DNA of 64,000 bases from Phallusia mammillata (Eukaryota). Each line of letters starts with the position of its first letter. Positions within the stretch are counted from its first letter, which is position 1. The position numbers and the translations under genes were made by a program. Positions 23,001 to 32,000 of the stretch are shown piece by piece. Location: NCBI GenBank assembly GCA_965637545.1, contig OZ281494.1:10850001-10914000 (forward strand). The letters are read 5' to 3'. A model generated the notes under the pieces. The model did not search any database. It had not been told where the DNA came from and was given only the letters and a program-made list of their open reading frames with translations.

Positions 23001-26000
23001 GTTATTCAGATTGTTGTTTTCTCCGACAATGTGTTTGCACTCAGAGAATATGCAATCAAAATGGGCAAGCCTTACATATATGGACCAACAAGTCAGAATG
23101 AAAGACTTCACATTTTGCAGAACTTCATCCACAACCCGAAAGTCAACACAATATTTATTTCAAAGGTTAGTAAATAAGTCAAAAATAGCTTGCAAAGGAA
23201 ATCCAAGTACACATGTTAATAGCATACTAATGCATAAAAGTTTAATTATTAATATCTGCCTACTAAACAGGGCATCTTTGTTTTAATAGTGTGCAGGGTT
23301 ATTTTACAACATTTATCAAACACACTTTAACGTTGAGTTTTATAGCAGGGTTGCTCTTGTAGTTATTTCTACACTTAGTAAATATTGGTTCAAAAGGACA
23401 TGAGCAGTTCAAAGTCACAAAAGTGTTTGACATGCTCTTTCCTTTCTCGTTCAGTTTGACAGTACATTACATTGGCAAGATTCGTCAAAATTATAGTACA
23501 AGTTAGACAACAGAAAATCTGAATCTAAATTACATGAGGCCAAGGTTTACACATTGGCATACAAAAATACACAAAAGTGTAAATTTTATTGTCTAGTTCA
23601 ACAAATGCAAACAGTTTTAAAGGACTTGCATTTTCATATTTTAAGACACTAAAATATTAAACTCGACAAATCTACCACACAATGCATTTTGTAAGCAAAA
23701 GTCATAACATTGGTTGAGGTAAAATAGTCTGTGTGATATTTTGTTGGACCATAACAGCCAATGTTCTGTGACCCAAGAACAGTTTTTGGTGGTTCTTAGT
23801 GTCTATACACAAATATTTGCTGAAAGTGCACTTTTAAGTCAAAGGTTTGTTTATACAGCATTTAAATGTCATAAAAGTGATTCTTTTTGCGACAAAAAAT
23901 CGAACTGTTGAAATAAGTTGCTTTGGTAAACAATGTGCTTTGCATTTGGTTCTACATTAGAATTTTCATTTTTATGGTCACAAACTGACCCAATGCCACT
24001 GTCTCCAACATTTGGACATTTACACATTGTATCAATAAGTTTTTCATGAATGTCGTTTTTCAACTGTGGTTGAACGTCAAACTCAAATTCATTTTCCTCT
24101 GAGTTTCCACCAGTGCTATTTTTCTCACTGTGTGGGTGGGACCAGTTTATAGGATAGTCCACATATTCATCAAAGTGTTCCAAACCTTCGTTTGACTCAT
24201 GAGATGAACTTTGTGTTGCAATACTACATGTTGCCTCATTTCCAAGGTCACTGGTACTTTCATCCATATTTCGCTCTGTTTTGTATTCAACCCCAAGCTG
24301 TAGACCATTGAGTTGTGTATTGCTGTTTTCTGTTGGTCTCATAGTGATAAGTTCATACTCTTCGTTGGGCTCATAAAGTTCTTCATTATGACTTCTGTCT
24401 TCTAAACCGGATCTTTGCATGTCATCTGGCAATAGGTTGTCAGGATGCTTTAGGCCTTTAATGGGGTCTTTGCATTTTCTGCAAGAAAGTGTTTTTTTAA
24501 CCAAAAAACTAAATAAAACAATAGTAGTAATTAGCAATGTTAAGTTACAAATGTTTTGGTGCTGTATGTGATTTATTTGGTTATCAAAAGACATGTAATA
24601 GTTTCAAACAATTCCAGTTCATACATTTATGCTTTTAGAAACACAACCTACAATGGCCTATGTTCTTACCTAAGACAAACAAAGTAGATAAAGACCAGTA
24701 AGATAAAAAACACCACTGTTGAAAGACACACAATCAAAGCAATCGGTACATAACCTGGGAAAAAAGTTTTGTTCATTAAAGTCATACATGTCACATATTC
24801 AAAATAAAAATAGCTTACCCGCGGTTTCAACATTGACTGCCTGTGTCCAACTGGAGCACCAAGTGCCATTATCTGCATATTAAGGAGGTGGTTCATTAAA
24901 CGAAATTGTTTCATGTTTTAGGTATAGGTTTTAGTTTCTAGGTAACAAGATATTGGTTTTACCAGTGCATGTGCGTAGTTGGATAGTGGAATCGCTTGGA
25001 AGGGGTAGTGTGGCATTTTGATGAGTTGAAAAGAAGTAACATTCATGTTTGTGCTGGTCAGGACATGAAACATCACTTGCCACCATTTGCCTGCAATGTC
25101 AAATTTATGTGCACATTTATAAACTTCTAGCAGTAAATTTTCTGAACATTATTTGGTTAGCCCATGAAAGTTATTGGGTTAGTGTGTATGGACTATGGAT
25201 CGCTACCATTTGTACATAATTTGACTCATGCAAGCATATTTGACCTAAAACAATGCCAATTATGAAATAATGGTTTTAATTTTTGTTTACCCTACAAACT
25301 GAAAACATTGATAGTAAGCAGCCTGGATGATAGTAATGCTATACAATCTAGCCTGTGTGTTGGTAAAAATCAGAGTTAAATATTCAAAATGTTTGTACCC
25401 AGTAGTTTTGATTTTGATGGTATATGAAGGATCTGTGAGTGTTGAAACTGGTTGTTTCCATTCTACAAAGTATTGTCCATCCGATGTTTTCTTGATGGTT
25501 GAGAGTTGGGGAACTGCCATTAGTGCTGAAAACCATAAAATTGTTCTTTTATAAAAGGAACAAGCAAATCCTATTCCATATAGCTCAGACAAGAAAAAGT
25601 CCACAGTTTGTCAAGCTGAGCATTTTATTTGCCACCAGCCGACTACATACTTACTTGAGGGTTTAGTTTTGAATGATAACACTTTTGAGAAAGGGCCAAT
25701 ACCAACATCATTGCATGCTGCTGTAACCATTGAGTATTGGGTGTCTGCTTCCAAATTTTGTACTGAGACTTGACTGGTTGGTGCAGGAATTTCAATGCTG
25801 TAGTTTTCTGTAAAGTTGTTCAAGTACTTAAAATATTTTAACAATGTGCCAGTAATTTTCCATACCACTTTTGGTCCAGTATTTGACCACAAACTTGGTA
25901 ATAGCCCCACACAGTAGATTTTGATTGATCTTTGTATGAAATGTAGCGCTGGACGATGTCACATCTTTAGCCTGCAATTGTGCTGAAATCTGTGGTTCTG

Positions 26001-29000: not shown

Positions 29001-32000
29001 CTATCCGCGGCGGGTCCATCCTTACTGCAATAGGTTGATACAATCATATTAGACTTCTAAAGATTTTATTTTAATAACGTAATGAACCATTTGTGCTCTA
29101 TGAGTAGAACTTGACAAATCTAACAATTTTAGAGTTTAACAGCAATTTTCATCTAAAATTGCCCAATATATACCTTTTATTTTTTTACCTTACAATAAAA
29201 AATATAATTTAATTTTTTTTCTGAAATCGATTTAATCAAATAGAATAGTTCGATTATAAAATACTGACTGGACTGTAAACTGACCTATGTCATATGGGCT
29301 AAAAGTTGAATGTGCCCTGCAAATGTCAAAATCATCATGGGATGTTATACTGATGGTAAATCGCACTTGGGATGCCTCAGCAATAAACTGACAATCTGTG
29401 GAGTTGGTTTGAATGTGAACATAGCAAAGTCCTTCTGCATTGCAAGTCACATCAGACGAACTAAAAATGTTCAACAATGGTTAGCTGTGCGAATCTCATT
29501 TATGTGTGACACTTTTTGAAATTTAACAAATTTGTCGTTCAACTGGTGTAACGCTAAACAAAATACTAATTGTTGTTTTTAATAACTTGTATTTCGCTGA
29601 AGTTTTGCCCACCAGAACGGTAGGGCTTCTTCAGAGCAACAATTAGTATTTTGTTTAGCATTACACCAGTTGAACGACAAATTTGTTAAATATGCAACCT
29701 GGTGGACGAAACGCCTGTTCAGTACTTTTTGAAATGGCGTTCAGTGTGCAATAAAACGGAATATGCGATTAGCCGGTTAACAAATACCGCATTTGCTCGA
29801 TTGCAAGCCGCATGGTGTTAAAAAAATAATGTAAGCTATTGTTTCATAATACATCTTTCTGTTGTTACATAGTGTAACTATTTGCCCATATTTGTTGGTT
29901 CCGTTGGATAATTGTACCCAGCAGAACGTATATCGACGTATAATCTGTACATGTAAGCGAGTTTTGAACCCAAAATAAGTTACAAAGTTGGAGTGTAGAA
30001 ATCATATCGGTATAAAATTAAACTGTAAGCCACCTTCGATTGTAACTTGTAAGCCGCGCAAACGGCAGGTAAAAAACAATATATGCCGCAGCTTACAATC
30101 GAGTAAATATTTATTGGAATTTCATTTGAACAAATCAAATGACGAATTGCATGATTATTTAACATACGATTTTGACAAAGTACAACATGACTTACATACC
30201 AATAGTTATGTAAATAGGCCCGATCTTTTAGGTGTGCTTTGTGTTTGTGTAGCAGAAATTCCGGCGGTGGCGACCATTGACAGTAAACGTACGAGTCCAA
30301 ATCCCCGTTGCCCCAACGATTAAGGGCAAATGAACAAGATGCCCAGCATGTTATAGCGAATCCTGGTTCGCATTTCGTCACAGTGTGAAGACTCGGCACT
30401 AAATAAAACAAATATTCCTGTTAATGCAAAAAAAGGACCAAAGGTCGATTTACTATATATACGCAAATACCTTCAAAATTAAAAGTGACTTGTATAAATA
30501 TTATGACGTTAGATAGTTAGAACAGGATATTTTCATGAAACTACTACGTCAATTATACCATCATTGCCAGAGGGTCGTGGTTCGTTACAAAAACGACACT
30601 ACTAGTGCCTTTGGTTTAGAAAATATCCTGATTTGAGTTACACACCCACCTGAGTTTAGCTTTTCTCGTCGTCCGCCTTGAGAATTGTTTTCGTCGCTGT
30701 TAGCTTGAGTTACGACGATTAAACATGTCGAGAGCAGAGCAAAAGTCAACGAGCGTTTGGTCACAAAATCCGACATATGCTTAAACTACGGTTTAAAACT
30801 CTTAGGGCATCTGATTTTTAACAAATGTGTTACAATAATGCCTTTCATGTGTAGGTATTAAAGCGTTTATGGAATGTCCTTTCTCACAAAGAATAACAAA
30901 GTCAAAAGTAGTTTTAAACCACACCTCATTAAGTTTACCCCTTTTTAGATCATATCACTTTTAGGTTAAATTTTGGTAAATGCGCCATGTAAAAGTTAAC
31001 TGCTTTTTAACGTTTCGGTCGTAATTTTATGTTTAACGAGATAAAACACACCACAAAATCAAAACAATATCCTGTTACCCCTGAATACGCTTTTCCATTC
31101 TTACACCCATTTCAACTCTGACCGTATGTTACATGCTTCTTAACAAAAGAATACGACTGTAACAAATGATATCAGAACCACCTCATTCCTCAGCAAGGAG
31201 AAAACTGCACTTCTGACCCCCTCGGCCAAATGTAACAGCCTGTTTTGTACAGCCAGTCCGTATTGTATAATTTGACACAGAGAAAGCAAACATGCCATTT
31301 TGCCTTACGCTTTATCCTTCACGGCTCCACAATTAATCATTAACCGAATGGGCAAACAACATAGCTATTGCTAAACGAAGACTCTGTTTTTGTTGGACCG
31401 CTCTGTCGTTATCCTAGGCCTAATGAGTCATTTATTGGCCTGAGACCCGTTCACCTTTCGAAGGCCTGTTTTTCTCGTCAAATGTGGTCAACAGTATGTT
31501 TGTGAACAAGGCTGTGTTTAAAAGTGTTTTTTTTTATGACAAAAATGGTGAAGAAAGTTTGTACTGCAACTAGGTAAACTATGAGAACAAATTTGCTTAA
31601 TGTTTTAATGAAAAAATGTTAATATCGTATGAAATACCAGCGGAACATGAAGTACTGCATTGTCCACTTTCCACCGATTCTTGCGGGATATAGAAGCGCC
31701 AATTGTACATTACGTTTTCTTAAAAATTTCAAACATTGCTTTTTTAGGTTGGAGATAACTCTATTGATCTTCCGGAAGCAAGCGTCCTCATCCAAGTCTC
31801 CTCGCATGGAGGATCAAGACGTCAGGAGGCCCAGAGACTTGGCCGAATCTTGCGAGCTAAGAAAGGATCCCTGGCAGAGGAGTACAACGCATTTTTCTAC
31901 TCTCTCGTTTCTCAGGACACGGTTGAAGTCGCCTTTTCGACCAAACGCCAACGGTTCCTGGTCAATCAGGGCTACTCATTTAAGGTACTTTTTAAGGAGA

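Follow-up and report, generated by a model that had tools for sequence, protein, structure and literature searches.

A conserved receptor gene of predicted cytokine-receptor-like architecture, nested antisense in an ERCC3/XPB intron of Phallusia mammillata

Introduction

What kind of protein is encoded by a complete gene lying antisense within a single intron of the housekeeping gene ERCC3/XPB in Phallusia mammillata? The locus is part of a 64,000-nucleotide (nt) stretch of contig OZ281494.1 (assembly GCA_965637545.1, forward-strand positions 10,850,001 to 10,914,000), called here the window, whose DNA is gap-free, AT-rich and eukaryotic. A preliminary description, made from the sequence, had read the nested gene as encoding a class I cytokine receptor of the gp130/LIFR type. 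Class I cytokine receptors beyond vertebrates are few and hard to recognise. The analysis reported below leads us to file the product as a new conserved receptor made of fibronectin type III (FN3) domains, with a putative cytokine-receptor-like architecture. It is not filed as a class I receptor, because the WSXWS, Box1 and YxxQ motifs of that class were tested and are not found as conserved features.

Structure and Transcription of the Nested Gene

Exon candidates on the minus strand, from 30776 down to 23869, were derived from open frames and splice consensus and were then checked against public reads. Six public runs contain the window, among them four small runs of one study (X1–X4), whose library type is guessed to be RNA. 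These four contain 20–28% of the sampled words of the window, which is about the exonic share. Their contigs were mapped to positions 24450–30449 of the window, a range that omits exon 1 and most of exon 16. Since such contigs show neither strand nor abundance, the strand was read from the GT-AG orientation.

Thirteen splice joints are present in the contigs, all of them CT..AC on the plus strand, that is GT..AG on the minus strand, and up to eight introns are spanned by single contigs of 1.5–1.7 kb. A fourteenth joint, between exons 1 and 2, is provided by a 65-nt loose end of X2 at 30400, the first 30 letters of which correspond to window positions 30652–30681. Spliced contigs from the four RNA-like runs therefore cover 14 of the 15 predicted introns. 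The joint between exons 2 and 3 (30200 to 29460) lies outside contig coverage, with two contigs ending at 29457, and this pairing is the sole combination preserving the frame. All 15 predicted introns are of the GT-AG type on the minus strand. Joining the 16 exons yields a frame of 894 amino acids (aa; 2,685 nt) that stays open up to its single, terminal stop, and an in-frame stop stands directly upstream of the ATG at 30776. The complete antisense gene of 16 exons at 23869–30776 put forward in the preliminary description is thus borne out by the spliced introns and the open frame, and splicing at the predicted junctions, which it had proposed to check, is seen at 14 of them in the minus-strand GT-AG orientation. 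The gene is transcribed independently, as a unit of its own within the ERCC3 intron. The contig word depth over the gene is low, at about 4–12. Within the window no second copy (paralogue) could be found, and Rfam and tRNA scans of 23000–32000 gave no matches.

The host gene was mapped from its open frames and from a foreign ERCC3 open reading frame (ORF). Eleven ERCC3 exons precede the hosting intron. The match to PF16203 ends at profile position 115 at 23168 and resumes at 115 at 31748, and one intron therefore encloses the whole nested gene. This intron 11 measures 8.58 kb, as compared with 0.1–1.9 kb for the other ERCC3 introns, a disproportion which had already been pointed out and which the profile matches and the exon map confirm. 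Outside the nested gene it leaves about 0.7 kb at the 3′ side of that gene and about 1 kb at its 5′ side.

A few additional observations concern the introns of the nested gene. An alternative 120-nt exon at 28017–28136, bordered by AG and GT, was rejected, since it would bring in a stop codon. Two unspliced contigs lie in intron 5, within 28016–28258, one from X1 (243 nt) and one from X4 (165 nt), both starting at 28016; they probably represent a retained-intron piece or a repeat. A contig of X2 (29285–29510) continues from exon 3 beyond its acceptor (29460) and has intron sequence as far as 29510, which could be intron retention or pre-mRNA. Intron 2 holds a near-perfect inverted repeat at 29526–29690, whose arms of about 50 nt differ by one mismatch and pair into a hairpin; its stem measures about 55 bp (−97 kcal/mol, z −17). 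Right beside this hairpin the RNA-like contigs accumulate, to a depth of 58–223 in the bin 29650–29849 as against about 5 on the exons, and many differing loose ends are observed at 29690–29728. This is as expected for a dispersed repeat resembling a miniature inverted-repeat transposable element, or for a hairpin-RNA source, in many transcripts.

Conservation of the Gene and of its Nesting

The DNA of a relative was found by a word search with ERCC3 exon 12 (136-aa ORF, 96% identity), in metagenome contigs of up to 46 kb from samples JGI 3300001913, 3300001539 and 3300027611 and ENA ERZ27241785, ERZ27241786, ERZ27241789 and ERZ27241799. This DNA, grouped as loci L001–L005 and L008–L012, was searched by tblastn with each exon of the window gene. 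Exons 2, 3, 4, 5, 7, 8, 9, 11, 13 and 16 give matches which are colinear, lie on the strand opposite to ERCC3 and are enclosed by sequences homologous to ERCC3 exon 11 (86% identity) and exon 12 (96%), in a hosting intron of about 19.6 kb. Every match is flanked by splice sites of the same phase. Five exon lengths (199, 176, 226, 91 and 54 nt) are identical in both species, including those of exon 2 (199), exon 3 (176), exon 9 (91) and exon 14 (54). Exons 2–16 of the relative, with borders set from homology and consensus rather than RNA, and with exon 1 not placed with confidence, join into an open frame of 867 aa that is 29% identical to the window protein. The donor of exon 5 in the relative (L008, position 13096) is GC (CAA/GCAAGT) where the window has GT, and is the sole non-GT donor in either model. 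The metagenomes were also scanned for a contig carrying the spliced junction of exons 3 and 4 of the relative; the only match, L015, is prokaryote- or phage-like and was put down to chance.

Because the orthologue sits in the same ERCC3 intron, with 29% identity at the protein level against 96% for a flanking host exon, both the gene and its nesting are old and conserved. Selection has kept its reading frame open, while its sequence changes much more rapidly than that of the host ERCC3. The nesting is nevertheless not general. Locus L013, in which exon 12 is 93% identical, has an ERCC3 intron of 1.07 kb at the same position (2369–3436) with no trace of the nested gene, and the corresponding intron of L006 has about 66 bp (8701–8767), again with no trace of it. 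Either an insertion in one lineage or losses elsewhere must accordingly have taken place. As to whether the nesting exists elsewhere, a point raised in the preliminary description, the antisense position in the same ERCC3 intron is kept in one distant relative and is seen in neither L013 nor L006; judging from these loci, it is common to at least two lineages but not to all ERCC3-bearing relatives in the data. Such conserved nesting is compatible with a functional link to XPB but does not show one. Taken with the transcript evidence, we regard it as almost certain that the locus is a genuine coding gene, both nested and conserved.

The Predicted Protein

The deduced product has a type I topology, with a signal peptide, a single transmembrane (TM) helix and a tail devoid of catalytic domain. 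It is best read as a single-pass type I membrane glycoprotein with six predicted beta-sandwich domains (D1–D6), followed by a non-catalytic tail of 203 aa. Eleven N-x-S/T sites are found in the ectodomain. The gene follows a regular design, with two exons per FN3 domain, a phase-1 intron at every domain boundary, and one further exon each for TM helix and tail. The inner introns are of phase 2 in D1, 0 in D2, D3 and D4, 1 in D5 and 2 in D6, the latter domain having an extra phase-1 intron ahead of the final 18-residue exon 14. Across exons 2–5 the phases thus read 1-2-1-0-1, in the window gene as in the relative.

Pfam, PDB and protein searches were run exon by exon, and exon profiles built from the two species were added for some exons. 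With Pfam fn3 (PF00041), exon 11 scores at or above the curated cut-off of 25 bits although it covers only part of the domain; matches are weak for exons 7 and 8 in the window. In the relative, exon 8, again only part of a domain, reaches 27.8 bits and exon 11 24.9 bits, exon 12 being weak. Both species together give clear fn3 support for D4 and D5 and weak support for D3 and D6. The roughly four FN3 domains expected beyond the first two are thus recovered as D3–D6 by exon-level profile matches across both species. In the window, exons 2–5, 6, 9, 10, 13 and the tail match nothing in Pfam. PDB searches by phmmer with exons 7 and 8 gave nothing useful, and an exact look-up of the 241-aa ORF containing the tail returned no record. 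A comparison by hhalign of the exon profiles of D1 and D2 with those of D3 and D5 gave no signal. The searched exons have, at this level, no recognisable relative in the libraries searched.

The other elements named in the preliminary description are each present at the expected place in the window sequence: the signal peptide, the C-x-W (C82-Q-W84), the paired cysteines, DPP (171–173), LWSKP (256–260), the TM helix and the tail. Comparison with the relative tells which of them are retained. In D1, both species have PSLH, all nine cysteines, ITCWASC, Y-x-Y-C-x-W, C-x10-C-x-F, DIC and a pre-hinge F-x-P. The conserved elements of D2 are D-x-P, PEC, W200, Y-x-L-x-Y, SYS-x-F, YNFT, IEE and LR-x-W-x-x-P, and those of D6 are W-K-x-P, a C-x7/8-C pair, IQ(L/V)(R/K)-x-C-T and NG..CS-x-W(S/T).

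Is it a Cytokine Receptor?

Several features of the first two domains bring cytokine receptors to mind. The binding module would be encoded by four exons with the 1-2-1-0-1 phases in both species. C82-Q-W84 and C121-x10-C132-x-F, both conserved, agree with the class I cysteine consensus, within a domain that has nine conserved cysteines in all. The positions of C-x-W, C-x10-C-x-F and the hinge resemble those of GHR, PRLR and gp130. Class I cytokine receptor genes share the 1-2-1-0-1 phases. A literature search found no statement of this pattern for class I genes; the published description concerns class II receptor genes (PMC8863823). As signs of a cytokine-binding module, the phases and the D1 cysteine and hinge layout are leads, not tests.

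Other results weigh against such a reading, and more particularly against class I. Exons 2–5, which would form the module, match no Pfam family in either species; no PDB chain is matched by phmmer with these exons taken singly, nor by the two-species profiles of exons 3 and 4. An exhaustive protein search with exon 2 yielded only four matches, all bacterial or spurious as judged by Pfam, and word searches with the tail and the exon 5 profile gave none, by a method that is blind to proteins much longer than an exon. The two-species profile of exon 2 showed a weak PDB likeness (E 0.07) to antibody light chains, in their B and F strands, through ITCWAS and Y-YCQW; this kappa V-domain likeness (30202–30396) was dismissed as chance, since the motifs are 22 residues apart, an impossible spacing. 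LWSKP of the window corresponds to VWGQP in the relative, with only R-x-W-x-x-P retained, and a WSXWS-like reading would accordingly come down to one tryptophan and one proline. A second WSXWS-like string lies in D6 just before the TM helix (CSSWT in the window, CSDWS in the relative), which shows how readily strings of this kind occur in the protein and how ambiguous any motif reading is. The DPP hinge is DAP in the relative, its first proline not being conserved. No Box1 is seen: the juxtamembrane stretch of the relative, KVLTKPKIQQDVL, shares no proline position with the window protein and has no PxP. YxxQ is absent from the tails of both species, between which no tyrosine is aligned; more generally, every juxtamembrane proline and every tyrosine motif of the tail differs. 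The nearest solved relatives of exon 11 are Dscam (3e-9) and PTPRF (1e-8), then PTPRS, contactins, neogenin and NCAM, with LIFR at only E 0.32; Dscam, LAR-type phosphatases and contactins are thus closer than LIFR. Finally, all four transcript runs come from one study and are only guessed to be RNA.

GHR and other known class I members also lack a canonical WSXWS, so that its lack here counts against class I membership but does not rule it out. Of the gp130/LIFR-type assignment made initially, what stands is the topology, the 1-2-1-0-1 phases and the conserved C-x-W, C-x10-C-x-F and F-x-P hinge; what does not is the support expected from LWSKP and DPP, which are not conserved, from Box1 and YxxQ, and from profile or PDB matches to exons 2–5. 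The preliminary description had also proposed that clustering with receptor phosphatases or other FN3 families would speak against it. The proximity of exon 11 to Dscam and PTPRF goes in that direction, but bears on a single FN3 domain near the membrane and says nothing of the binding module.

How do the alternatives compare? The product may be an FN3-repeat adhesion or recognition protein of the cell surface, a tunicate-specific orphan whose cysteine-rich D1 has its own fold and whose likeness to cytokine receptors comes only from the generic design of two exons per FN3 domain with phase-1 boundaries. This is a serious possibility, which we nevertheless hold to be somewhat doubtful. The only significant profile matches are to generic fn3, exon 11 has the adhesion-type neighbours listed above, exons 2–5 match nothing, and WS, DPP, Box1 and YxxQ are not conserved. 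D1 has nine conserved cysteines in 125 residues, as compared with four in a typical binding module. The conserved C-terminus ESL[LV] resembles a PDZ ligand, and such C-termini are common in adhesion and synaptic proteins. Against this reading speaks the conservation of C-x-W, C-x10-C-x-F and the F-x-P...D-x-P hinge at the expected places, as does the combination of an ectodomain made entirely of FN3 domains with a tail of about 200 aa that has no catalytic domain, a design usual in cytokine receptors. In addition, the inner phases 2 (D1) and 0 (D2) follow the cytokine-receptor pattern (PMC8863823).

A class II type receptor, of the interferon/IL-10 receptor kind, with extra FN3 domains, in place of a gp130-type class I receptor, looks very unlikely. 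Six domains, with the binding module far from the membrane, are what tall class I receptors typically show. In class II ectodomains the number of FN3 domains is two or four, and a C-x-W after the second cysteine together with C-x10-C-x-F are class I features. At the exon level, none of the class II families in Pfam (Tissue_fac/Interfer-bind type) is matched. What such a receptor would account for is the lack of a conserved WSXWS and the 1-2-1-0-1 phases, documented as said for class II genes (PMC8863823). That the locus is non-functional, its spliced contigs stemming from an antisense RNA that encodes nothing or from a pseudogene in decay, with a fortuitous open frame, we consider extremely improbable: the low contig depth, the guessed nature of the RNA runs and the lack of a database protein match could be so explained, but not a 2,685-nt frame open across 16 exons, nor the open 867-aa frame of the relative at 29% identity, with its phases and nine of nine D1 cysteines kept, which is unexpected without selection on the protein. 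On balance, the likeliest reading, to which we give about an even chance, is that of an orphan receptor that evolves fast and belongs to the cytokine-receptor type.

Tail and Proposed Mechanism

The tail is 24% identical between the two species. GDSG-x-x-S-x-x-DH and, at its very end, ESL(L/V) are nevertheless invariant, and R-x-C-K is kept where the tail leaves the TM helix; Pfam detects no kinase or phosphatase domain in it. DSGxxS looks like a degron of the beta-TrCP type, such as is known in PRLR, GHR and IFNAR1, and ESL[LV] fits a putative class I PDZ ligand. The two motifs suggest regulated turnover and anchoring.

If the product is indeed a receptor of the cytokine-receptor type, D1–D2 (exons 2–5) would form the binding module for a protein ligand and D3–D6 a stalk. 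The ligand may act by bringing receptor chains together. Because it has no enzyme domain, signalling by the tail would depend on proteins that it recruits; coupling to JAK is conceivable, with no conserved Box1 in its support. The level and the position of the receptor could be controlled through DSGxxS and the C-terminal ESL[LV], respectively.

Coordinates and Neighbouring Features

Features of the nested gene, of its product and of the flanking ERCC3 exons are collected in Table 1.

Table 1. Features of the locus and of the predicted protein (window positions, or residues of the 894-aa product; contigs are those of X1–X4).
Feature	Position	Strand	Content	Support
ERCC3/XPB exon 11, before hosting intron	22998..23168	+	PF16203 (ERCC3_RAD25_C) positions 62-115	E 5.5e-23
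ERCC3/XPB exon 12, after hosting intron	31748..31990	+	PF16203 positions 115-195	E 7.9e-46
Exon 1	30650..30776	-	ATG 30776; signal peptide; phase-1 donor CAG/GTGGGT	Joint with exon 2 from X2 loose end
Exon 2	30200..30398	-	First half of D1: C52, ITC60W, C64, YVYC82QW84; phase 1 in, phase 2 out	Acceptor in contigs; donor 30200 inferred from frame closure
Exon 3	29285..29460	-	Second half of D1: C121-x10-C132-x-F, C156, F-x-P hinge	Joint 29285 to 29024 in contigs
Exon 4	28885..29024	-	First half of D2: DPP, PEC, W200, Y-x-L-x-Y	Both joints in contigs
Exon 5	28562..28721	-	Second half of D2: YNFT, IEE, LR-x-W-x-x-P (LWSKP here)	Joints in contigs
Exon 6	27585..27676	-	First part of D3	Joints 27676 to 28562 and 27280 to 27585 in contigs
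Exon 7	27055..27280	-	Rest of D3 (FN3)	Joints in contigs; weak Pfam fn3, E 0.019
Exon 8	26523..26707	-	First part of D4 (FN3)	Joints in contigs; Pfam fn3, E 0.013
Exon 9	26374..26464	-	End of D4	Joints in contigs
Exon 10	25866..25997	-	First half of D5	Joints in contigs
Exon 11	25655..25807	-	Second half of D5, canonical FN3	Joints in contigs; Pfam fn3, 25.1 bits
Exon 12	25399..25525	-	First half of D6 (VEWKQP)	Joints in contigs
Exon 13	24963..25090	-	Second half of D6 (C-x7-C, IQLRTC)	Joints in contigs
Exon 14	24819..24872	-	18-residue juxtamembrane piece, NG..CS.W[ST] string (NGTWCSSWT here)	Joints in contigs
Exon 15	24670..24754	-	TM helix	Joints in contigs; hydropathy scan
Exon 16	23869..24478	-	203-aa cytoplasmic tail; stop codon 23869-23871; R-x-C-K, GDSG..S..DH, C-terminal ESL[LV]	Joint 24478 to 24670 in contigs
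AATAAA, candidate poly(A) signal	23585..23590	-	278 nt past stop codon	Sequence only
Signal peptide	residues 1-25		Exon 1	
D1	residues 43-167		Exons 2-3; 9 Cys	
D2	residues 168-267		Exons 4-5	
D3	residues 268-373		Exons 6-7	
D4	residues 374-465		Exons 8-9	
D5	residues 466-560		Exons 10-11	
D6	residues 561-663		Exons 12-14	
TM helix	residues 668-690		Exon 15	
Tail	residues 692-894 (203 aa)		Exon 16	

Two other introns of the host gene contain features of their own. ERCC3 intron 8 holds a tandem array at 20185–20658, made of three 159-bp units that are 95% alike, with the same open frame in each. In ERCC3 intron 12, a 179-aa ORF on the minus strand (32716–33255) matches zf-RVT (PF13966, E 4.6e-7) and looks like the tail end of ORF2 of a retrotransposon of the type without long terminal repeats (non-LTR).

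Significance and Comparison with Known Systems

The locus illustrates how easily a complete gene can escape notice when it lies antisense within an intron of a housekeeping gene. In practical terms, intron 11 of XPB, with its flanking exons 11 and 12, offers a synteny anchor for finding this very divergent gene in other tunicates. As a conserved, expressed and tall FN3 receptor which the exon-level protein searches did not bring up, the product would be a candidate third member alongside the two of Ciona, and a candidate partner for orphan helical cytokines. A more specific proposal, which we think rather unlikely, is that it represents an undescribed, fast-evolving ascidian lineage of tall class I cytokine receptors besides the two of Ciona, nested in XPB since the compared lineages split and serving as partner chain or second receptor for a helical cytokine of invertebrate chordates; multi-chain cytokine receptors would, in that case, predate vertebrates. 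Should the cytokine-receptor reading fail, a conserved orphan surface receptor would still be left.

The closest general resemblance is to the tall class I receptors of the gp130/IL6ST–LIFR type. They share with the nested-gene protein a type I topology, in which an N-terminal two-domain module is followed by a number of FN3 domains, by a TM helix and by a long tail without catalytic domain, as well as two exons per domain, the 1-2-1-0-1 phases over the first two domains, the C-x-W and paired cysteines of D1 and a proline hinge. In contrast, the nested-gene protein has no leading immunoglobulin (Ig) domain and four stalk domains instead of three; its WSXWS is reduced to W..P, Box1 and YxxQ are not conserved, and its module gives no exon-level profile or PDB match. 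In Ciona, two class I receptors have been reported, cigp130-like and the single-exon clf-3 (PMC1963337). The former has at least 1124 aa and an Ig-CHD-FN3-TM-Box1 topology (Liongue & Ward 2007, PMC1963337), whereas the present protein has 894 aa and neither Ig domain nor Box1. The nested gene is thus probably distinct from the cigp130-like gene. No ligands of the IL-6 family and no leptin have been annotated in tunicates (PMC12284397).

With GHR and PRLR the contrast lies mainly in the overall architecture, since these receptors consist of a membrane-adjacent two-domain module only and have a clear Box1, whereas the module of the nested-gene protein is membrane-distal, with four extra cysteines between the cysteine pairs and without Box1. 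The D1 of GHR and PRLR has C-x(7-9)-C-W followed by C-x10-C-x-F, an extra pre-hinge cysteine and a (V/I)-x-x-D-P-P hinge; GHR has a degenerate WSXWS, and the tails of GHR and PRLR bear the DSGxxS degron. The cysteine layout of D1, the hinge, the degenerate WSXWS and DSGxxS of the nested-gene protein are all reminiscent of these features. Drosophila Domeless, reported by Brown et al. in 2001, is said to have an all-FN3 ectodomain with an N-terminal binding module and an incomplete WSXWS. Compared by description, this invertebrate receptor is similar on all these points, but its module is encoded by a single exon (PMC1963337), unlike that of the nested gene, which is split 1-2-1-0-1 as in vertebrates.

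Class II cytokine receptors have in common with the nested gene the 1-2-1-0-1 phases (PMC8863823) and the lack of WSXWS. The nested-gene protein is taller, with six domains, its cysteine pattern is class I-like, and it has no exon-level match to them in Pfam. The FN3 domains of Dscam, LAR-type phosphatases and contactins resemble exon 11 at E 3e-9 to 1e-3, through the motif L-x-P-x-T-x-Y...A-x-N-x-x-G-x-G-P-x-S; the likeness concerns one half-domain, and these proteins carry Ig and/or phosphatase domains, whereas the nested-gene protein has neither. As a locus, finally, it belongs with the metazoan antisense genes nested in introns, being a whole gene, start and end included, within an opposite-strand host intron, and it differs from them in that the nesting is common to two lineages whose nested proteins are only 29% identical.

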